A stretch of 49,073 bases of DNA from Oopsacas minuta (lineage: Eukaryota > Animalia > Porifera). Of the stretch, positions 785-33,288 are shown piece after piece. The notes under the pieces are model-generated. The model was not told the origin of the DNA. It saw only the letters and a program-made list of their open reading frames with translations, and ran no database searches. The number at the start of each line of letters is the position of its first letter. The stretch's first letter is position 1. The stretch covers positions 1 to 49,073 of the forward strand of contig JAKMXF010000050.1 of the NCBI GenBank assembly GCA_024704765.1. Direction: 5' to 3'. Position numbers and translations under genes: made by a program.

Positions 785-1779
785 ATGGCGTCATATAATC
801 AGATGAAAGTGAGATTGCCTATTAGTGCTAGTTCAATTCCTCACAGACACCCAGCTCCCCAAAAGGAATGGGAGTGTCCTTTTTGTGGATCTGTATTCGA
901 TGGAGAATGGACTAAAGATATTCACATGAATTCCTGTAAGAGAAAATCACTTAATATACAACAACAACAACAACAACAACAACATGATACAGCTTGTCTT
1001 CCCGCACAAACTCAGCCTAAGTGTCCTCAACCTACAAGTCAGTTATTATCAATTTCTGTATAATAATAGGAGATATTTCTTACCATTCAATCTTAATAGA
1101 ATCTGAATATTCAATATTCCTGTACATGAGATTACAGCAGAATAATGAAAACATAGTTTACATCAGTGAAACTAATGAACAATACTCTCTCGTTTGGAAT
1201 TCATCTAAATTTCAATACACGGGTCATGCGGTCCTCAGTCCTGGACTGCACACAGGTCGTATTCACTTCAGAACATCTAACAGGTTTAGTAAAGTTAAGA
1301 GTTTTCAAGTTTCTCCGTCTACGAATGACATAGAAATATTAATACAAGATCCTCCAGTAGATAATGTTACAACACGAAAACCTGTCAAGAATATAGCTAG
1401 ATCAACTAAGCAGGTTTTAAACTCTCCACCTTCTCAACCTGCAGAACCAGTTAAGAGTAGTTATGATGACGGACAGATATACGCTAACATTAGTAAATCT
1501 GCCGATAATATTCGTCTTCAATACGCAGTAGACCATTACAAGGAGAAGGTTACAAAGCTTGAGGGAGAGAACTTTAAATTGACAGAAGAGAATGCAAAAA
1601 TGAAAGATATTATTGACTCGTTTCACATTAAGATGAGAGAATTAGAGTCTGAAGTTACACGCTTATCAGTATTAGAAAGCAAATCCAATGTCTCTAAAGA
1701 CAAGCCACAAATAACCCCACCTCCTGTCTCACCTCGCCCTGATATCTACCAAACATCTGTCAAACAGCGCAAGAGTTGA
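785..1779 (+). CDS. Paralog A: CCHC zinc finger + polyQ + unassigned beta-domain + coiled coil + Pro-rich tail (~320 aa)
   Basis: Exons 785-1037 and 1070-1779; a 32-nt phase-1 intron (GTCAGT...TAG) joins two ORFs in frame; CPFC-x12-H-x3-C; domain homologous to paralogs B, C, D. Confidence 0.8.
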
Positions 1780-1873
1780 ATCTTATTTTTAATATTTTAT
1801 TATTTGTATATATTTTAGCTAATAATATTTCAAATAATTGAGTGTTTTATTTAGTTTGTACCCAAATATTAGA

Positions 1874-3616
1874 ATGTCAATACAAGATGATAAACACACA
1901 CAATCTCAGAGCTCACTAGCCAAATGGGGACAGTACCCTCCTTCCAATAGCGGGTACCAGTGGACCTGTAATCTCTGTAACAGCATATTCGGAACTCTAG
2001 AGCAGAGAGAGAAGCATCAGCACGAATGCCCTGGGATAAACCTTCCTAGCCACCAGTCTCAATGGAACAGCAGTGTGTCAAGCAGACAACCCTCCCCTCT
2101 TTATGGTGGAGCAGATATTCTACATAAATATTATCCTCCTATAACACAGCCTCAAATGCCTCTAATACAGGGTATTATATCATTATATGTTATATGACGT
2201 ATTAGTTGAGTTATGAAATAATTCATTTGCTAGAGACTATAAGGCTACCACCACCACAGCTTCCAGTTACTTTAAATCAACACACTACTACACCTGCTAT
2301 GTATCAGCAAACAGCAATAGCACCTGGATATCTACACAATACTACACCTGCTATGTTTCAGCAAAGAGCAATAGCACCTGAATATCTACACAATACTACA
2401 CCTGCCATATCCCAATATACAGTATCAGTTCCTGAATATCTACACACTACCACACCTGCTATGCATCAGAACACAGTAACAACACCTGAATATCAAAACA
2501 CCTATACCTCTGCTACATACAATTATTCAGCAGCCACAGTTCCTGAATACCAAAACACTATTACATCTGCTATGTATCAGCACAAGTCTAAAGAACATGC
2601 TTATCAACATACACCTGCTGCAATTGAATCTCACACAGGAAGTATGTAATGGTGCTCTTTATTCCAGTCTGATACTTGTAGAGATTATTATATTATATAT
2701 TTAGGTAGGAGAGTTGAGCTGTATTGGATGAAGGAGAGCCCTACTCTAGATATACAGGTTACATACATCGACGAAGTTTACGGAGGAATAGTACTGCAGT
2801 GGAATTCAAAATCTGAGATATTTGAGGGTGTAGCTGAGCTATCTTTAGGACAGCACACCGGATGTTTAACACTATCTACTAATGACACCATTCTTCCTAT
2901 TAAACAATTCATTGTTGAGCAAGGAAGTCCCGATCCACAGAAAATCATGATAACTACTGGACAGAGAAGAGTGGTTACACCTCAAACAGGTGAGTTACTA
3001 GACTAGATATAAGATAGGAACATTATAACAATAGTATCGTATATTAGTGACATATGTTGAATCAGATAGAGGAAGAGTAACTAGTGAAGAGAAAAGAAGT
3101 TTACAGGATGATATTAACAGATTAACAGCTGATCTGGATAATAGGAATAATGAACTTGTACAACAGAGACAAGAATATCTCAAATACAAACAAGAAAACA
3201 CAGATCTAACTAAACAAGTAGAGTTACTTCTTAAAGATAACAAAATATTGAGAACAGCAGGTAAACCTGTTGTTAGCATACCTGTAGAGATTGAAACACT
3301 ACAGCTAAAGATTCAAGAATGGGAGAAGAAATATGGAATATTAGAAAATGAAGTGATTAAGTTTAAAGAGGAGAAGAACTCTGCTAATGAATACTCCGAT
3401 TATTTGTATCAACAAAAACAGCAGTTTGAGGATAAGCTACAGGAAGTTCAGCAAAAGTTGAATACGTCTCAAATACAGATTACTGAGTTGAAAGCCAACC
3501 TTCAGGAATTTGTAAAAGATGAGAACGCCCCTCCCCCTCTCCCTACTCGGTGTAAGCCTGTACTCAAAGAGGAAACTCAATCAGCTGATAAAGAAGTAAA
3601 AGAGTCAGAAAATTGA
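1874..3616 (+). CDS. Paralog B: CCHC zinc finger + 18-aa Tyr repeats + unassigned beta-domain + coiled coil + PPLPTR (~519 aa)
   Basis: Exons 1874-2171, 2234-2641, 2705-2989, 3048-3616; all introns GT-AG phase 1, frame continuous. Confidence 0.82.
2287..2630 (+). repeat. Coding tandem repeat, ~54-bp / 18-aa unit, ~6 copies
   Basis: ac(t/c)acacctgc core at 2287, 2341, 2395, 2449, with degenerate copies after; peptide TTPAMxQxxxxxPEY(L/Q)(H/N). Confidence 0.85.
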
Positions 3617-3814
3617 AACTTTTGTATATTTATGCATTGTCTCATCAAACTGTATCGATTATATTCCATATATTTCCTGAATACTTCTCGCCCCCCAACC
3701 GATGCTTGATTTGCCAATTAATGTAATTATATTTGTATTCTAAATAAGCTACAGGAGAATATTTATGGAATTATATGTTAGTATCATTCACACTTATTAG
3801 GGTAATTTAATTCT

Positions 3815-5209
3815 ATGGCAGATAGTAAAGGCTTTTATTACTCCAATCCTCCCACCAGTAAAAGAAAGAGTCTCAAGAATTCAACCGCAGAAGAAAAATT
3901 TGTTCTAACAATTTCAGAGCTTAACACTAAACAGGGACGCTGTCCTCCTTCTAACCCTCCTCCTATCTCTCCTAACAAACCACAATTTTCTATTTTATAC
4001 CCTGAACAAGACAGAAGTATGAATTCATTTTTGTGCAGATCTTGGTGTAGTTTGATTAATTGTATTAGTTCTTACAGGTCCTGTGAAACAGCCGGTTATG
4101 CTGATCTGGACGAAACAGCAAGACACAATTAACAATTATGTCACTTACTTCGATAACCTAGACAATCCATGCAATCTAGAGTGGGATAAATTGAAAGAAT
4201 TATACTCTGCCCTTGTTCATCTAACCTGTGGAGAGCATAGGGGCTGTCTGGCTCTCAGTGACAGAGACATCACTTCAGAAATACAGAGCTTTTCAGTTAT
4301 AGAGAAATCTCAAACTCAGTCTGTAATCCTCTCTATAGTAAAATCACAAGTTAAACCTGGGCTGGTTAAAAGTAGGTCACAAATTTACATGTTAGTATGC
4401 AATAATTATATTACGTGTATGTTTGTGTGTATTAGGTAAACACGTTCCTAATCCGAAGTTAGGAGAGAAGAAGAGGGAGGGAGAGGAATTGCAACATATG
4501 AGAGAAGAGAGAGAGAAATTAATCAAAGAAATAACGTCAATCTCTGCTCAACTGCAGAAGGAGAAAGACTCTTCAAAAATATACAAGAAAGAAATAATTA
4601 GTTTGAGAGACCAAGTAGATAAATTAAAGAAAAAAAATGCGGATAATTCTGAAGTAGCTGCTGGAGAGAGGAATGAAGCTAGGCTAAGAGAGGCTAGATT
4701 AGAGGATGAGATTAAAAAGCTCAAAAATCCAGGTAGACATAATTTACACATGTTATTACATGACTTATAATATTAAATACAGGTTGTGTTTACTAGTTTT
4801 GGATGAAGCTCAACAGAATAATAGCTGGAAACATGTTAACTCTGCTTCTGATAATCCAGTGCCAGCTAAAACAGCTCCTAAATCCTCAGATTATATTAAC
4901 TTTGATACTCTCACACAATACACTGAATATTACACAGAGTTTAAAGAATTAGAGAAATCTAAAAATAATCTTTCCAAAGCTAAAACGGAATCTGAAACAA
5001 AAGCAGCTAGATTATTAGACTTCCAACACGAAGAGAGGAAGAAATTAGAAATTGAGTTAACACAAACCAAGAAAGAATTATCAGAGTCAAAACAAGAAAT
5101 TGAAAAATTGAAAGAAAATGTTCATCGTCCTCCTCTCCCAGCCAGATCTCCCAAACTTCCTATATCTCCTGCATCTCAACAGCAATGCCTCACTCACAAT
5201 TACAAATAA
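3815..5209 (+). CDS. Paralog C: Pro-rich N-terminus + unassigned beta-domain + coiled coils + PPLPAR (~401 aa)
   Basis: Exons 3815-4016, 4078-4371, 4436-4732, 4797-5209; all introns GT-AG phase 1. Confidence 0.82.
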
Positions 5210-5332
5210 GCTTTCTAATTCATTTCACACAAAACTACGTATATATGAATATGACGGACAGTTTATTGAATGATTTGTTTGTAAATTTTGATTCATTTTT
5301 AACATTTTGAATATACTTATAATTTGAATGTA

Positions 5333-11117: not shown

Positions 11118-14100
11118 ATGCTAACAGGTTTTGTCTCTAACTTATTACGTCATATCACGAAATTAAGGTATCTAATGGCTGCTAAGCACCCTTCCCCCTC
11201 CCCTCTTGTCTTTCCTCTCCTCGCTCTTGTTGACTTCTATCCAGTATCAGACAAGCTCACCATCCAACTGACTCTCAATGGGAAAGCTAGATCCATGGAG
11301 CGTTCTGGCTCCGAGCAGCTCAGCAAGTGCCTAAAGAGGATACAACTGAATGCCTGTGACAAGAAACAACGGGGTATTAACAAGAAAAACAAATCAACAG
11401 AACCTATGCCCTCCTCTCCTATCACTGACCTACTATTCAATAAAATTCCTATTAACTCAGAGCTAAGTAATTCAGAAGCTTGGAAGGAAGATTGTGTACT
11501 TAGAGTAGGTACAGAGGAGTTCCATGTTAGGGTAAATATTCCTAGAGTATTGGTCATCTCTCTACCGAGACACACCCTTCAGGCCTGTCCAGTCGTTCCT
11601 CAACCCCAGTTTAGTCGCTGCGAGATGCACTCTTGTCAATGGAGTTGGTGTCGAGTAGAAGACCCTGAATTCTGCGAAAAAACTCTCTTACAGGCCCTCT
11701 CCCATGGTAGGGTTGAGCTATCCGATCAGCTGATGAGTACTTTCAAACTTGTCAAAATATCTGACAGCTATGTATACTGTCCTGACTCAGTAGACGTGGG
11801 TTACAAACTATTAGTGTTATGTCAACCTCTTGATCCTATTAGTAGACAGAAAGTCGGAATTAATTGTTATGCCATTAGTTCAACTCCAGTACAGCTGTTT
11901 CCTGAGACGGAGGGACAGGTTGACAGGTTTATGCATACTAGACAGGTGACAGATACAAACCATCTACGTGTAATCTCTTACAATGTAAGCAGGGTAGCAT
12001 TACTAGCATACTCAGTTACTATAGTATATCTATCGATTTAGTAAATATGTGTAGATACTAGCAGACATGTGGGCAAATAGCAAAGACTGTCAAACTGTAA
12101 TCTATCCTCACTGCTCTCCTCTCTCTCTAGATTCAGATTACAGACGAGCACTGACTAATCGAGAACTCATTAACTATCATCCAGACATTGTGTGTCTACA
12201 AGAAGTTAGCAAGTATAGGTACACTGACTCAATAATGCCTGCGATGGAAAGTGTCGGCTTTACAGGACATTTTGCATTAAAAACCGGTGAAATGCCGGAA
12301 GGAGAGGTGATTCTGTACCGCAGAGACCGGTTTGAAGTTATTGACGTGTACTCCCTCCACTCAGGTATATTCTTTAATCAGAGTAATGCAGTATTACAGT
12401 AGCGCTAGGGTTTCATACAGGTTCTCAGGTCCATACGCCTAAAAATGGATTTTAATTCATTTCATACGCATAGACTATACATTATGCATTATGGTATAGG
12501 AGTTTCTGCCCCTAGAGAGATATTTTCATACGCTTAGATAACACCCTGAGTAGCGCGGTAATTCCCCAAGATATATGTCTAGACATTCATTCTCATATTC
12601 CACCGCAGAGACTAAGCATTTAAAGAATCTTGTAGAATTTTCGCGTTCCTGGATTTACATTAGCTGAAACTATTGAGCCTGTATATACCCTAATATATCC
12701 TAATATATCCTTTGGGAGGTACACTCATTTATATGAAAGAGAATTATATACATACGTATATACACAGTCTATTATAGAATTTGTGATTTAGGACTGTTAT
12801 GATTTTTTGGGTGTATCTAGTAACAACTCCTGCACACCAGCTGATAACTGTAGAGAGAATGGTTGTACTGTAGGTAGAATATCACTATCTCCTAGGACAA
12901 CATCCCGTGATGATCTCCTAAACTCATTTCCACTTGCTTTGATTGGAAGCATTCTCCCGTCCATTCTAGAGCTATACTGCCATTTATATTGTCTATGTAC
13001 TCAATGCAGGTGTTAAGAGTTGCATACTGCTTCTTCCAAATAAGTTGTACGTTCTGCTTCGTCTCCTCTATCTTTGTTAGAGTTGTCTTTTTGAATTCTA
13101 CAGAATATACAACAATAACAATGCACCATATTTATCCTATTTAATAAGTACTGTACCTGTAAAATCTGACTCAAATTCTTCTTTCTGCACATGTAAGGTC
13201 AGCTGCTGTACACCTGTTTGTATATCTTTAACTTCAAAGGTGTCAATTCCTGCACAAGTATTCGTGTCACTAATCCAGAGAGATCCCATATGTATTCCCA
13301 CACTTAATTCAATGTTTGATTTTTCAAAACATTCTCCATTCCACTCTAGTTTAAAAGTACCGTTTAAGTTGTCTGCGTAGACTATTTCCCTCTCTAGGGT
13401 AGGTAGCTCTTTCTCCCACGAGATGATGCTTGGTCTCTTCTCTGTAGAAACAAATAATTCAATTCCTGATAGGTCAACATGTACAGCAACGTAAACTGTA
13501 TTTATTTACTTATCTATTTTATCAGGTTGACTCTATATTTGTGTAACTTACTTGTTATTATCTCCTTTTTTGTAATGTTATCTCCTGTTATGACTTCACC
13601 CCCGCTCCAGCTAGTAGTCATACGTTCAAACTTTTCATCAGTTGATTCTGAAGTATCGAAACTTGCTATTGACATTGATCTACGTTTCACTTCTACAAGA
13701 AAGATATCATAGTATACTTAAGTCATTGCCTTAGTAATCGTAAATTAAAATTACTCATCATTGACCTGCTTTAACATTTATTTCACATATTTTTTCAAGA
13801 CACACGAATAGGTTTTGAATATTCCACTTGACCTCAATCTTAGGTATAGTCCAATTAGGCTTTTTCTTAACAATCTCGTCATCCATACGTATAAAGCAAC
13901 GATCTAGGGAATCTGCTACTGAAATACTTTGTAGCTGGTCTTTTAGGAATTTTCTACTTTCAATTAACTTTTTGTAATCCTCAAATTCTTTTTTATTTGC
14001 TGTTCTGATTCCACCAAAATGTTATCTAACTTTTCAAGCAAGCAATTCTTCTTTTCAAGGAAAGCAGTATTCAGCTCAGTGAATCTGTTTTCTATAATAT

Positions 14101-15279
14101 TCTTTTCTCTTTTAATAATATCTCTCAGCTCGGAGAGCTTAGATTCTAACTCATCCGGTAGAGACTCCATTTTCAGTGTCTTAATATTTGGTAACTAATA
14201 TTATTTAGTTTATCAGTTAATTATTTATTTATTTATTTAATCTAACAATTAATGGATTTATTATTGCCAATGCATATTGGCTGATAATAATTTGATCCTT
14301 TTTGATTATTTATTAAATCTATCGTAATGGTAACAGAATATTCTATGTAGTAATCTCTATTCAGTATTCGCTGTATGTTTTTGTAGGGGAGTATATGAGG
14401 GTTGAAGAGAATTCGGTTCTATACAACTCTCTGTTACTTTGGGGAGAAGAAGTTTCATATCACTTCTTATCACTGGGTACTATATTCCAGATTTGTATTC
14501 TAAAAGACAAATCTAATCCTAAGAGAGTTTATCTAGTTGCTAACACACATTTACACTCTAGACCTTCCGTACCGTATCTACGTCTATTCCAGATGGCTCT
14601 GCTAATCACACATATGGAGAGACTGGTAGAGCAGTACAAGAAGAGAGAAGGAAAGGAAGCTTGTGTTTTGCTCTGTGGAGATTTCAACTCTACCCCTGAC
14701 ACTGGACTAATTCAGTTCGTACAAACAGGTGAGATTGATGTAGAATTAAATAAGAAGTACAATACACCTCATTAAACCGACACAGTAATGCTTTTCTTAT
14801 TAAAACCTTTGTATTACTCTTCAATAATACAATAGAATAGTATAGAGCACCTGTACGCTAGGTAATGGTGTAATTTAATTGATATCGGAGTTTGCAATTG
14901 CGCCATTATATTTATGATATTATTAAGCCATTAACGAGTGACTATAGTACAGTTAATTCATTTAATAGGAATGATTGAATCGAACAATATTGACTGGCAA
15001 CCGTGGGCTCTGAATGTACCGACCAAGTTTGTATTCCCAGGGATTGCTATGAGTCATTCTCTCCAGCTGTTCAATGCCTGTGGACCGACTCCTTTCACAC
15101 ATTTCGCTGGCCACTACACTGGGACTCTAGATTACATTTACTGTGATACACAACATTTCAAAATACATGATGTAGCTCCTATGCCTGCCCTCTGGGAAGT
15201 GAGCAAAGAAACTGCCCTTCCTAACACTTGGTTTCCCTCAGACCACCTCCCAATTGTATGCACCTTGAATATTGTTTAG
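11118..15279 (+). CDS. PDE12: 2',5'-phosphodiesterase 12 (EEP/CCR4-family deadenylase)
   Basis: Exons 11118-11984, 12055-12364, 14387-14728, 14969-15279; motifs SYN|ILAD, CLQEV, NTHLH, LCGDFNS, TLDYIY, PSDHLP; PDE12-type N-terminal extension. Confidence 0.92.
12797..14170 (-). CDS. Paralog D, nested in PDE12 intron 2: N-terminal coiled coil + two copies of the unassigned beta-domain (~377 aa after correcting two 1-nt frameshifts; may be a pseudogene)
   Basis: Minus-strand exons 14170-13766, 13692-13552, 13441-13157, 13097-12797 with GT-AG phase-1 introns; exon 3 reads KRPSIISWEKELPTLEREIVYADNLNGTFKLEWNGECFEKSNIELSVGIHMGSLWISD. Confidence 0.75.
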
Positions 15280-15433: not shown

Positions 15434-15724
15434 ATGGCAGACGAGAGACTGGAGAAATTGGCTGAACAATTGGAGCAGCCATTAGTAATCCAAACTCCTG
15501 GATTTGATGCAAGATTCCCGAACACTAACCAAAGCAAGAATTGCTGGCAGAACTTTGTTGACTTCCAAAAGTGTGTAAAGCTAAAGGGAGAAGATTACGT
15601 TCCCTGCCAGTACTTCAAACGCACGTACGAGTCCCTTTGTCCAAACATATGGGTGGAGAAATGGCAGGACCAGCTGGAAAAGGGAGTATTTCCAGGACTC
15701 AAAGAGAGGAAGGCTCACCACTGA
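15434..15724 (+). CDS. COX6B: Cytochrome c oxidase subunit 6B
   Basis: TPGFDARFPNTNQSKNCWQNFVDFQKCVKLKGEDYVPCQYFKRTYESLCPNIWVEKWQDQ; intronless. Confidence 0.97.
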   Translation: MADERLEKLAEQLEQPLVIQTPGFDARFPNTNQSKNCWQNFVDFQKCVKLKGEDYVPCQYFKRTYESLCPNIWVEKWQDQLEKGVFPGLKERKAHH

Positions 15725-27776: not shown

Positions 27777-30700
27777 TTATTTAAAGTTGATTGGACAAAT
27801 TTCGAACTCTGAAGAATTATTGAGTATTTCTGGAGATTTATTCGGAGTTTTTGGCTTTGGTAGCTCTGCCTCAAAGAATCCCTCATCATCGACGGATTTT
27901 AAGAAGACTTCATCGTCTGTAACCAGAGAGTCCATGTCTATACAAATACTCCCTTCAGAAGTGTATGAGAGGATTGGGCAGGTCTCAGGCAATGGAATAA
28001 ATGTTTTAAGTGAGTACTCTTGAATATAACCTGGGTGAACATACGTAAATAAAATCATTAGATAATATTCTCTTGTGCAACAAATTTCAAGAATAATACG
28101 TTAATATCATCAGTATGCAAAATTAGCGAGTGAGTCAGGCAAAATTACTTTACACATAATTGCTCATTAAATAAATAGTTTTAGTTATTTAATCTAGTCA
28201 CAATATGGAGGCAAACAATGTAACTAACATATACGTATCTATCTAGCAATTATTGAAACTAACGATTCAACGTAGGCTATAACCAGACGGCACCACCACG
28301 CATCAATAAATATTACTGGATACCAGACAGACTGGCCCTTATGTCTTAGCTAAATTATTAACAACTCAGCAGTGCTTTAAGACTTAATTAAATAAGCAAT
28401 AGTAAAAATTATGCTTAAATAGGCTCACGTTGATTAATTAGAAACCGCATTGCATCTCTGTACCCCTGACGGTAAAGCTCATCAATGGCTTCTTCAGAGG
28501 AAGGGAAGAGTCCCCTGTAAACGTTTTGCAAATTAAACCAAGAAAAGTCAAGCCTAAAGGGATATACGATTTGTAAAACAATTCATTTATTAAACAAATA
28601 TGTATTATACAATCATATAAAGTTACTAACTTGTGTCCTACGAATGGGAAACACCCCGCGTTATATTTCCCATTGTGGGGGTCTATTGGCAGATGTCAAA
28701 GTCTCCTGAGAGTGGAGCTATCGTTATAGTGCCCAGGTCGTTAGCATAAGGCAGATTGTTGGTCAGTCCTCCATCAACGAATTTCTGTACGAGAAAAGAT
28801 AATAATATATAAACCCGAAGCATTACACCTGAACAAAACCCAAATAAATTACTCACCTCGCCTTTGTAGGAAGGGAAGTCTAGTCCCATGTATCCAGGAA
28901 TGTAGCTGGATGCAAGAATAGCCTAATTAGAAGACAGTCATTAAATTAGCAGACGTAATTAAATTCTGTTGTGACTAATGCAGATTAATTATCCATCTTG
29001 TGTATAATTTACGGTTAATATCATTCACGGCTATAATACACGAATATAATAATATCGGATTACTTACATGTCGGCGGCCTACATTGTCGGCTAGCCGACA
29101 AATACGGCTAACCTATTGGAAATCAAGTAATAATTCTTAACATACATTTCATTTTCCTTTTTACAGAATACTATTATTTGTATACGGATTGTATATGGCA
29201 GAGCCAATTTATTATAACGATCAAGATTATTTTGCTGCTATTACTGCCCAAAGTTATACACTTGATTTTCAAAGGACCTCACCCTCAGTACCTGACGATA
29301 ACCAAAATGATGCGATTATATCATTCGATGATTATGTATATGATGATGATAACGAAACTTGTATATCTAAATTTCCTCAATTTATTGGTGAAAATACAAA
29401 AAATGTTTTGGCTGAGGAGACTGAAGGTTTACAAAGTCACACCTCAGTTGAGGATTATGCCAGATCTGACAGAATAACAACATTATCTGGCTTTCGTAGA
29501 ACAATTGTTGATTTAAGGCGGGTCAGATCTATTGGATTACCTGATGATACGCCTAAAAGACCGTGGGAATCACATGCAACAGCAAAAATGGAATTAAATA
29601 CATGGGCTAGTGACTTTACAACTGGTGGGGGGCGATTCAATCTTGTTTGGACCTCTACTTACAGACAAACATCGAGGAAGGGGAAACAAAGAATGTTATC
29701 TTGTTACAAATCAAGAAAAATGAGTTTACACAATGATGTACGTATGACAGTTACTTAGAGAACTAACTGTCCTTACAATATTCGTATTGAAGATTGTGTT
29801 GAAGGATGGGCAATTGCGCATGCTAACTTTTTCCACAATCACAGTTTAGTGAAAAACAATAGTGGTAGTCTAGCACAAGCCTCACTTAGAGAATTCCCTT
29901 TAGAATTCAACCCACTAGGGTTTGAACTAACGCGCGCTGGTCTCTCAGCAACTAAAATCAACCAAGTTTTTATTAGCAAGGCTCAGGATAAGAATTATCC
30001 TATCACATGGACATATCAAGATGTCTATAATCGATTCCACCCAAGTGTTGAAGAGAGAAGCTTTGATGCTTCAAATTTTATTGACTACCTCCAACAGAGA
30101 CAATTCAGCAAAGGCCTATATTTTTCTGTTCAAACGGTCGAGGACGGCTCCCTGAATGCAGCATTTTGGGCAGTAACTGATAACCTTGAACGCTGGGCCC
30201 AGAATCTTGATCATAATCCACTAATATTTGATACAAGTCATGGAACGAACAAATACGCTCTTAAATTCTCAGCCTTTACAACAATTGACAATGACGGAAG
30301 AACTCAGATTTTAGCTTGTTCTCTACTCGATCGTGAAACCCAGGAATCTTTTGTATGGGTTTTCACTGAATTTCTAAAAGCTTTTAAACAACCACCAAAA
30401 GTAATAATCATGGATGGTGACCCAGCAATGGCTGCTGCTATAAAGACATCGTTTCCTTGCATTGTACACCTCCTTTGCACATTTCACATTGGGCGAAATG
30501 TAATGTTGCATATGAAACCCCTATTCAGTGGGAGAAGTGAAAATTTGCGTAGAAGTTGGAACTCGTTCTTGCAAAGTTGGTGGATCATTTGCAAAAAGCA
30601 AGATTCTAATTCTCGTTTGTTATTTGATGAAGAGTGGAATCGTTTGTTAGAACAAGTTCAACACAGGCAAGAAACAACCACCGAAATTCATTACCATTCA

Positions 30701-31129
30701 GTTGAAAAATTTCTATACTCTCTCTACGAAAAAAGGAAACAGTGGGCTGCACGGTGGACCTGGGAAGTCTTTACTTTGGGTGCTCACTCCACCCAACGTT
30801 CTGAATCAGTACATGCCTCTATAAAACATTACTTAAATTCTCATACTCTACTTACACACCTAGCAAACAGAATTGATGAGAATAGAGATACTCTTTCAGA
30901 ACAAAATAAAGGGCGTGCAACCCGGTTGGCACTTAAAATGGCTACTTATTCAACTAAGCATCCTATAGAAAATAACTTAGATATAACCCCATTCGCACTT
31001 ACAATTGTGAGAGCTCAAATTGCTCAATGTATGCAGTATTGTGTTGATGAAGTATCTAGATCATCTGAAGAGCTAGTTTTTGAAGTCAGACACATATTAT
31101 CTCGAGAAGACCTCTCAGGTAATTTTGAG

Positions 31130-31187
<58 letters not shown>

Positions 31188-33288
31188 GTGCAGCTTCAAG
31201 TGTTATATGTATGATTTGAATCTTAAGCTGTGTAATACGTCCTTTGAAGCAAACACAGAGGCGTGACTCGTTTAGAGATTGTTAGGGCCATTGGTGAGGC
31301 CTTTGGTAAGGCCATGGCCATGACCTTACCAACCATTCCATAGCCTACGCAACATATTACATTCTATACATAAACACGTAAAACGCACTAAATTATGTGT
31401 ATTATTTACTAAGATATTGTGCTTTATTTCACTTTCTTAGTTGCTCGAGAGGAATATGATTATCAAAATGATGATTCAGAGAAGTTAATAGCAATTGATT
31501 TGGGTCTATATTCAACAGTGTCAAGAAGATCAACACGTATAACAACATTGACATCTTGCACTTGCCTGTTTCCATCATCATGGGGTTTGCCATGTCGGCA
31601 CATGCTACTAGTTTACCATCAACAAAGATTGACTGATGTACCATGCAATGCAATAGCAGATTTTTGGAGGGTAAGACTACTGATATGCATTTTAAAATTC
31701 ACTGAAAAATCTATTCCAATACTTTGTGCATTAATTAACATTGTTCTTCTACGTTTAGGCTAAGAGTCGTGAAGATAATGGTTATGTCCTATACAATTTC
31801 ATATGCAATGACAACAATATACAAAACATTAGAACTGTGGAAACTGATTCGAATATTTCAAAGGATGAAAGGTATGCAATAATGACAACAGAGTTTAAGA
31901 ACATAGCGTATATTGCCTCTTTCGATCAGAGTTCTTATAATATGGTAAAAGAGAAACTAGCTGATATCTACCATCTACTAGCTGTCGATCACCCCGAAGC
32001 ACAAATAGCACACAAGACTACTTCGAATATCACTAAAGTAAAGAATCCTAGACATGTTAAGAGTAAAGAACGTCCACCAAATAAACGGAAGCGGATATTT
32101 ACCGAGATGAAAACAAAAAAGAAAAGACAATTTGACAGACAATTGTGAACTTAATTGATTTAGTTAGTTAATGCATACTATTTCCAATAGGTTAGCCGTT
32201 TTTTCGGCTAGCCGACAATGTAGGCCGCCGACATATAAGTAATCCGTAATAATATTATTATGTTAGTTTTTAAGTAAAGAATTTTCATTAGCATACACTA
32301 AAAGAGATATTACTTATCGTCCTACGCAACTCGATTCATTAGAAAGTGCATAACTACTAAATAGTTACTCGAACAATAAATATATCACAAATATTAAAGA
32401 ACTTCTAACCAAATATTTGCGAGTGTCAGTTAATAAGGGATTATCACTGTTTTGAAATTTTGGCAACTTATACAAATATAAATTATTTGGCGTGTCACGT
32501 GTCAATCTTGAATCCTTGATATTGATATATTGGTACAATCGTGTCGTCTCTTGCAATCATTATAGATTAGTATATTAGATAATTCCTAATATTCGGAACC
32601 CTCGATAAGCACGTCACTGAGCTAGCGAACTTAATTCAAATCAACCTACTTTTACGCTATACTTCTGTGATCGCCAAACACGTTAATCACAATTCTACAA
32701 TCCCGTAAAAGTGCTAATATTTCACTGTACAAAGATACATAGAATATAACTTACATCAATGAACTCTTCTCTCGTGTCGTAGTGAGTAATTATTTTGTTG
32801 CAATTGTTTCCTGTGACAGAAAGGTGTAATCTGTTTGTTGCTATTTTATGTGCATGTTTTGGGAACAAGAAATCAATACCGACTCTCAAGTGCTCTGTGA
32901 GAAGAAAGTTTGGGCTGAAAGGACCTAGGTAGCTCGACTGCATCTCACGTACCTAAAATAAGAATTATCCAATCGTGTTATGGAATAATTCAAGCTTTTA
33001 TACATATGTCAATAATTAAACTAATAAGGTAATAACTAACCATTTGCCTCATAAAGTTGAGTGCTTTGTCAACTGGACATTCCATTAGAGTAACAGCTGC
33101 ACACAAACCTCCAGCCGAGGAACCGCAGAACACTCTATCTGCTCTAACAGGTCTCTGCCCTTATCTCTGAAACATTGAATTACTCCCAAGTGATAGGATG
33201 CTCTGAAGCCGCACCCACTGAATGACATCTTACGGACAGACCCGTCCCATTCAGATATCTTACTAACTGATTCATGGATGTCAGACAT
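27777..33288 (-). CDS. PNPLA2: Patatin-like phospholipase, PNPLA2/ATGL-like (two 1-nt frameshifts in this sequence)
   Basis: Six exons: 33288-33041, 32952-32755, 28922-28857, 28784-28631, ~28554-28426, 28030-27777. FSGCGFRASYHLG; GSSAG after +1 correction at 33123-33124; YLGPFSPNF; ASSYIPGY; FVDGGLTNNLP; DICP after +1 correction at 28688-28689; QGYRDAMRFL. Subfamily assignment is by motif similarity only. Confidence 0.8.
29195..32148 (+). pseudogene. MULE transposase (FAR1-type DNA-binding domain, DDE core, SWIM finger), ~847 codons with one in-frame TAG
   Basis: Exons 29195-31118, 31441-31670, 31759-32148; TAG at 29756-29758 just before RTNCP...HNH; LIFDTSHGTNKY, IIMDGDPAM, LCTFHI, TQRSESVH; SWIM CTC...LPCRH. 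Confidence 0.88.
31130..31187. repeat. (AAT)n microsatellite in transposase intron 1
   Basis: ~19 perfect units; it produces the spurious poly-Ile tail of ORF 29849-31219. Confidence 0.97.

Follow-up and report, generated by a model that had tools for sequence, protein, structure and literature searches.

In Oopsacas minuta, a glass sponge (hexactinellid), a minus-strand gene sits antisense within intron 2 of the plus-strand PDE12 gene on contig C50, whose 49,073 bp were analysed here in full (the window). It is a genuine nested gene, older than the split of O. minuta from its relatives, and by homology it would encode about 377 residues: first a TRIM-type coil from a coiled-coil/NHL family, then a linker of 47 residues, and finally a tandem pair of beta-sandwich domains of ~90 residues each. 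The sequenced genome appears to carry two one-base deletions in this gene, one in the A-run at 13994-13989 and the other in the CC run at 12896-12895. The public model of 319 amino acids (aa) would then be a workaround of the gene predictor, consisting of an invented intron of 77 nucleotides (nt) and a premature stop. We give an even chance to the reading that the locus is a very young pseudogene, or a null allele, in the sequenced genome.

The host gene was identified by two plus-strand open reading frame (ORF) pieces, at 12067-12363 and 14389-14775, that align to human PDE12 (4z0v). Exon 2 (12055-12364), which follows the acceptor of the 70-nt intron 1 and ends before the donor GT at 12365, aligns to human residues 139-228 (E 7e-19), and exon 3 (14387-14756, 3' end approximate) aligns to residues 258-346 (E 1e-12). 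Intron 2, which holds the nested gene, extends from 12365 to 14386 (2022 nt; GT 12365-6, AG 14385-6, phase 1). The original prediction for this DNA had given this intron the same bounds and had pointed to its length relative to intron 1, and the coordinates, the splice dinucleotides and the human PDE12 alignments all agree with it. Splicing of exon 2 to position 14387, which had been named beforehand as the test of the nesting, gives a GT-AG phase-1 join (..SLHS-G-EYMRVEEN..) with no stop. Host exons flank the guest on both sides and match successive stretches of human PDE12; because they do so and the phase-1 join is open, the nesting claim stands. The ATG at 14170, from which the minus-strand gene had been predicted to start inside the intron, is present, and the public model starts there too. 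In the O. minuta assembly (61.46 Mb, 365 contigs), a DNA search with the whole of intron 2 found no second copy of the nested gene, and there is therefore no recent parent copy or haplotig with which to compare it. Rfam and tRNA scans of intron 2 were without match.

The three introns predicted for the nested gene, at 13766/13692, 13552/13441 and 13157/13097 (73, 110 and 59 nt, respectively), are exact GT-AG introns in phase 1 and equal introns 2-4 of the GenBank model. Their acceptors are pyrimidine-rich, like those of the neighbouring genes. All exons lie on the minus strand, and the two middle ones, of 141 and 285 nt, are symmetric. The first of these (13552-13692; exon 2 of the prediction and exon 3 in GenBank) is a 47-codon linker, phase 1-1, with an open frame and GT-AG on both sides, for which no paralog was found elsewhere in the genome. 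The second (13157-13441, 95 codons, phase 1-1) is domain copy 1, which is intact and was recognised from matches to paralogs, from the orthologs P0039/P0067 and from a fold model with seven strands. The first part of the domain copy 2 exon (12895-13097, to ..GDHHGMLS) is 49% identical to copy 1 and 67% identical to the ortholog P0037 over 51 residues. The N-terminal coiled coil and the two tandem ~90-aa copies foreseen for this gene are present, as is the duplicated domain exon, in the form of two copies on symmetric phase-1 exons. Together the four exons sum to 1129 nt; with one extra base at each of the two frame breaks, the sum is 1131 nt, which is 377 codons.

The first break lies in the coil. 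Read from the ATG, the frame runs for 68 codons and then meets TAA 13966-13964, and the remainder of exon 1 (KKEFEDYKKLIESRKFLKDQ ... IPKIEVKWNIQNLFVCLEKICEINVKA) is open in a different frame. A coil profile built from 14 N-termini of the coiled-coil/NHL family matches the first part of exon 1 (13988-14170, ATG frame, coil residues 1-61) at profile positions 15-70 (29 bits), and the second part (13766-13994, shifted frame, including the IPKIEVKWNI motif) at positions 72-141 (23 bits). The second part also aligns to residues 81-153 of the L011 coiled-coil/NHL protein. In a paralog on contig C111, both exon 1 matches are contiguous in a single ORF (436610-436774 and 436775-436993). The two profile segments occur in successive frames and meet at the A6 run 13989-13994; given this continuity of profile and paralog across the frames, one base is missing there relative to the family reading.

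The second break (12892-12896) lies in domain copy 2, where the CC run 12896-12895 is followed by a premature stop. The frame encoding ..LEWTGECFQSKQVEMSLGDHHGMLS stops at TAG 12894-12892, and the rest of the domain (LGDSDILPTVQPFSLQLSAGVQELLLDTPKKS, ~32 codons at 12797-12895, then TAA 12799-12797) sits in a third frame, with 61% identity to the C-terminus of P0037 over 31 residues. P0037, an 85-aa ORF from another assembly to which P0066 is near-identical, spans this point in one frame (..GNHHGMLSLSDSDSLPLVELFSV..GVQEVLLDTPSKQ, then the stop). The window is collinear with P0037 except for the C at 12895, which is common to the codons TCC (GMLS) and CTA (LGDSD), where P0037 reads GMLS-LSDSD, and the two sequences end at the same stop position (..LLDTPKKS and ..LLDTPSKQ, each followed by the stop codon). 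A short intron in place of the second break was considered and rejected, as the only GT..AG option is ~35 nt long, under every local intron (at least 52 nt).

Frame-disrupting lesions of the kind sought in a pseudogene are thus seen twice, the first against the paralog family and the second against the ortholog P0037, and the guest ORF is broken at both points in the assembled sequence. The original prediction, that of four exons forming one intact ORF between 14170 and 12797, does not hold for the sequence as given. Its three introns and both domain copies lie where they had been placed, but translation of the window refutes it, with TAA 13966-13964 and TAG 12894-12892 in frame and three frames needed to read the gene, and we leave it practically no probability. 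It had also been proposed that real frameshifts, combined with a lack of spliced minus-strand reads, would mark a dead copy; the frameshift part of this is found twice in the sequence as assembled.

The N-terminus of the nested gene is identified by sequence homology as the TRIM-type coil of a RING-less, B-box-less coiled-coil/NHL family, which, within the sponge genome, bears out the resemblance to the coiled coil of TRIM/NHL proteins noted earlier. Both halves of exon 1 match the N-terminal coil of this large family weakly but specifically (genome-wide E 5.7e-4 for the first half, its best own-genome match, and 1.25e-3 for the second). The family members of O. minuta are single-exon proteins of ~430 aa, such as KAI6657359.1, in which a coiled coil is followed by NHL repeats. 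The N-terminal ~135 residues of the nested gene are collinear with the family coil, and the motif I-P-x-[IV]-E-[LV]-K-W is common to both. Pfam searches found no RING, B-box or NHL repeats in the GenBank protein (P0011) or in any exon, and the nested-gene protein begins directly with the coil. Neither half of exon 1 matched Pfam TRIM_CC (PF25600) at E<=1, and the family member P0006 itself scored 19.1 bits against this entry, under the cut-off of 30. The second half of exon 1 drew no match in a search for homologous proteins, a blank that carries no weight; in such searches, domain copy 1 returned only P0039, and P0011 returned only itself.

Both domain copies have orthologous ORFs in two other assemblies. 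Those of copy 1 (P0039/P0067) are 59% identical to it, and those of copy 2 are P0037/P0066. The pairs P0037/P0039 and P0066/P0067 lie on European Nucleotide Archive (ENA) contigs of 728,632 bp and 1,000,046 bp, respectively. The gene for COX6B lies just beyond PDE12 in the window (15434-15724), and its orthologs, P0005 and P0004, are on ENA contigs of the same two sizes, synteny being read from the matching sizes only. Since the ortholog exon ORFs are on contigs that match the COX6B contigs in size in both assemblies, the evidence argues that the placement in the PDE12 intron is old, rather than the result of a recent move. A scan of JGI metagenomes with COX6B returned distant animals only, at 63% identity or less.

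In a tree for which copy 2 was read through the second break by means of an X, this copy falls together with P0037/P0066 (support 91/96), and copy 1 is nearest to P0039/P0067. Path lengths between the nested-gene orthologs (0.68-0.83) resemble those of other paralog-ortholog pairs (0.3-0.96). Judged by the ortholog groupings and these path lengths, both the gene and the duplication inside it are thus older than the species split.

The gene had been described as hidden, but it is already in GenBank as 'hypothetical protein LOD99_10656 [Oopsacas minuta]' (319 aa, P0011), a five-exon model in which the domain-profile search recognises two domain stretches. Mapped back onto the window, P0011 has exons at 14170-14031, 13953-13766, 13692-13552, 13441-13157 and 13097-12895, a total of 957 nt or 319 codons. 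It agrees with the predicted gene in locus, strand and start codon, and its introns 2-4 are the three introns given above. It differs in having five exons instead of four, in skipping 77 nt of coil coding sequence and in stopping at TAG 12894-12892, so that ~27 residues of the coil are absent from it, as are the final ~32 of domain copy 2. The extra 77-nt intron (14030-13954, listed from its donor) bypasses the first break, and its removal deletes family-profile positions 56-82 (27 positions). Purines dominate its acceptor, whose pyrimidine fraction (0.27) is the lowest among 13 local introns. A 50-nt GT-AG phase-1 alternative (13968-13919) likewise restores the frame past this break. The C-terminus of the model is the premature TAG produced by the second break. 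The annotation was made with BRAKER1/Augustus using unstranded RNA-seq hints, and RNA coverage was demanded only of models shorter than 100 aa; the LOD99_10656 model is therefore not evidence of splicing. One intron of the model was probably invented and its C-terminus is probably false, and the annotation merits a flag as disrupted or a re-check against the reads.

If the sequence is correct, the locus could still be expressed as the 319-aa product, with the frameshifted stretch of the coil now serving as an intron of 77 nt (or of 50 nt, 13968-13919) and the protein ending inside copy 2. The GT-AG bounds for such an intron exist, a length of 50-77 nt is normal here (local introns are 52-76 nt), the model came through BRAKER, which used RNA-seq hints, and the product would keep coil, linker and domain copy 1 intact. 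Nonetheless we consider such a product unlikely: the acceptor of the 77-nt intron is the worst of the 13, positions homologous to the family would be lost from the coil, and the protein would end in half a beta-sandwich with its last strands gone. Moreover, gene predictors routinely invent introns of this kind, and for models of at least 100 aa RNA support was not a requirement.

We infer that the two breaks are real mutations, and several observations weigh against this. Both losses are in homopolymer runs, which is also where the errors that remain in long-read-assisted assemblies usually lie. No other damage is seen: start codon, splice sites and terminal stop are all intact, and none of the correct frames contains a stop. 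This is compatible with either view, since the probability of finding no stop is ~0.33 after ~20 neutral substitutions, the number that corresponds to two indels by the ratio seen between copies of a MULE transposon (below). Ortholog identity is undiminished after the second break (61%, compared with 67% before it), and in the tree copy 2 shows no lengthening of the O. minuta branch; the damage is therefore either very recent or an artefact. If it is an artefact of assembly or consensus, or if a minor allele was sequenced, the locus would hold an intact four-exon gene of 377 codons with the architecture originally predicted. The single-base nature of both homopolymer losses, the otherwise intact gene with similarity that carries on past the breaks, the intact orthologous exons in two other assemblies and the use of PacBio reads would all fit such an error. 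However, the assembly is a SPAdes hybrid of Illumina and PacBio reads that was then polished by Pilon (PMC10280926), and the Illumina polishing speaks against residual errors of this type. Two errors within 1.1 kb would also be unlikely, given that the flanking PDE12 exons are intact and that about 17 of the 21 coiled-coil/NHL paralogs have unbroken ORFs. Copies of the MULE are found in the window at 29047-32255 and elsewhere at C26:52887-55707 and C310:1340526-1342767, with 95-96% identity. Between the copy in the window and that on C26 there are 78 substitutions and 7 indels of a single base, nearly all of the latter in short runs. This ratio looks natural rather than error-dominated, and the loss of one base from a homopolymer therefore belongs to the normal indel spectrum here and is not by itself a sign of error. 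On this evidence we hold an assembly error or minor allele to be possible, with the odds against it, and we retain the very young pseudogene or null allele as the preferred reading.

The domain that is doubled in the nested gene is a seven-strand unit of ~90 residues with the signature L-x-W, G-x-H-x-G and a conserved Phe. Copy 1 carries all invariant columns, and copy 2 has LEW and GDHHG, its frame breaking straight after. The domain copies of the nested gene and its paralogs are 27-49% identical, and synonymous sites are therefore saturated. Single copies are present in three plus-strand genes of the window, at 1153-1311, 2719-2940 and 4086-4355, and on contigs C22, C55, C113 and C322. No match to the domain was found in Pfam (searched with every exon and 23 family members), in a PDB profile search or in the ESM Atlas; the weak tail of matches to the domain profile is made up of bacterial proteins with Ig-like repeats. 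An AlphaFold model of domain copy 1, based on an alignment of 23 sequences, is a seven-strand beta-sandwich (pLDDT 91.7, pTM 0.79). Its best structural neighbours are CBM20 and CBM48, with a VIA-align Z of 8.2 (root-mean-square deviation 2.3 A, 80/93 residues), where a Z of ~8 is the background of the tool for unmatched models, and with a Foldseek E of 9e-4 (TM 0.58). The starch- and glycogen-binding modules CBM20 (beta-amylase, glucoamylase, STBD1 8x8k, laforin 4rkk; 1b90, 1cqy) and CBM48 (AMPK beta, 1z0n) are consistently the top fold matches, but the domain has no sequence relation to them in Pfam or PDB, and the likeness is one of fold only. The model would place the domain closest to the CBM20/CBM48 fold class, a borderline assignment that implies no function, and glycan binding, if read from the fold, would be speculation.

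Other genes carry the domain in other settings. In the window, three tandem plus-strand genes at 785-5210 (P0021, P0014 and P0012; paralogs A-C), with introns of 52-76 nt, have the domain on a single exon and then a coiled coil, and the first two start with a C2H2-like zinc-finger motif. In six proteins of 800-1200 aa, namely P0013 (KAI6649078.1, locus L006 on C322), P0019, P0020, P0034, P0040 and P0058 (A0A2C9LH93 of Biomphalaria glabrata), the domain precedes a long coiled coil and, at the C-terminus, a CAP-Gly; it is in the N-terminal part of most of them and mid-chain in P0020 and P0034. The snail protein A0A2C9LH93 matches the domain with E 6e-5, and the domain is therefore not restricted to sponges. 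In P0047 (232 aa, from an ENA assembly), the domain is followed by a stretch reminiscent of a protein-kinase N-lobe, with what look like its glycine loop and AxK motif, and this protein may be another head-swap in the domain family. At L008 (2330-3207 on contig C55) and L009 (on C113), a family member adjoins a Tc1/mariner-like transposase that is split into two overlapping ORFs. Identity between these two loci is 99.1% for 2.1 kb and falls to 81% thereafter; the comparison, with 16 substitutions and 2 indels, was uninformative as to assembly error.

The nested gene shares the PDE12 intron with a dispersed repeat of ~132 bp (12407-12538), which is downstream of the gene and separate from it. 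The repeat has at least 40 copies in the genome with 74-90% identity, and it gave no tRNA or Rfam match; terminal inverted repeats were not found in it.

The ancestral or intact protein would most likely be a coiled-coil dimer or oligomer that presents two tandem binding domains. Tentatively, and with less confidence than we attach to a recent loss, the locus could be a live adaptor gene that has been kept antisense in PDE12 across glass sponges, in which the coil presents two CBM20/48-like domains as a binding head and the breaks are artefacts or belong to a null allele. If so, the gene would add one more module to a recognition repertoire of the type 'one coil, swappable heads', as the same coil carries NHL propellers elsewhere in the genome.

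In comparison with known systems, the locus resembles the intronic antisense nested genes of other metazoans, in which the whole gene likewise lies within one host intron on the opposite strand, and relative to these the frame breaks are its sole unusual feature. Nested antisense genes are common, and the wider interest of the placement is therefore modest. The architecture is a clean case of domain shuffling in a glass sponge, in which a TRIM-type coil of an expanded coiled-coil/NHL family appears to have been joined to a duplicated beta-sandwich domain, the same domain that heads CAP-Gly proteins in sponges and a snail. Paralogs A-C and the CAP-Gly proteins (KAI6649078.1 and the snail A0A2C9LH93) share with the nested gene the ~90-aa domain, with L-x-W and G-x-H-x-G, on one symmetric phase-1 exon. 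They have it as a single copy, upstream of a long coiled coil in paralogs A-C, where it comes after the zinc-finger-like motif in P0021 and P0014, and in the long proteins accompanied by CAP-Gly at the C-terminus, whereas the nested gene has a coil of another type, placed at the N-terminus, and a doubled domain. Compared with the coiled-coil/NHL family, from which its coil would derive, the nested gene is without the NHL propeller, is divided into several exons and continues from the coil into two beta-sandwich domains.

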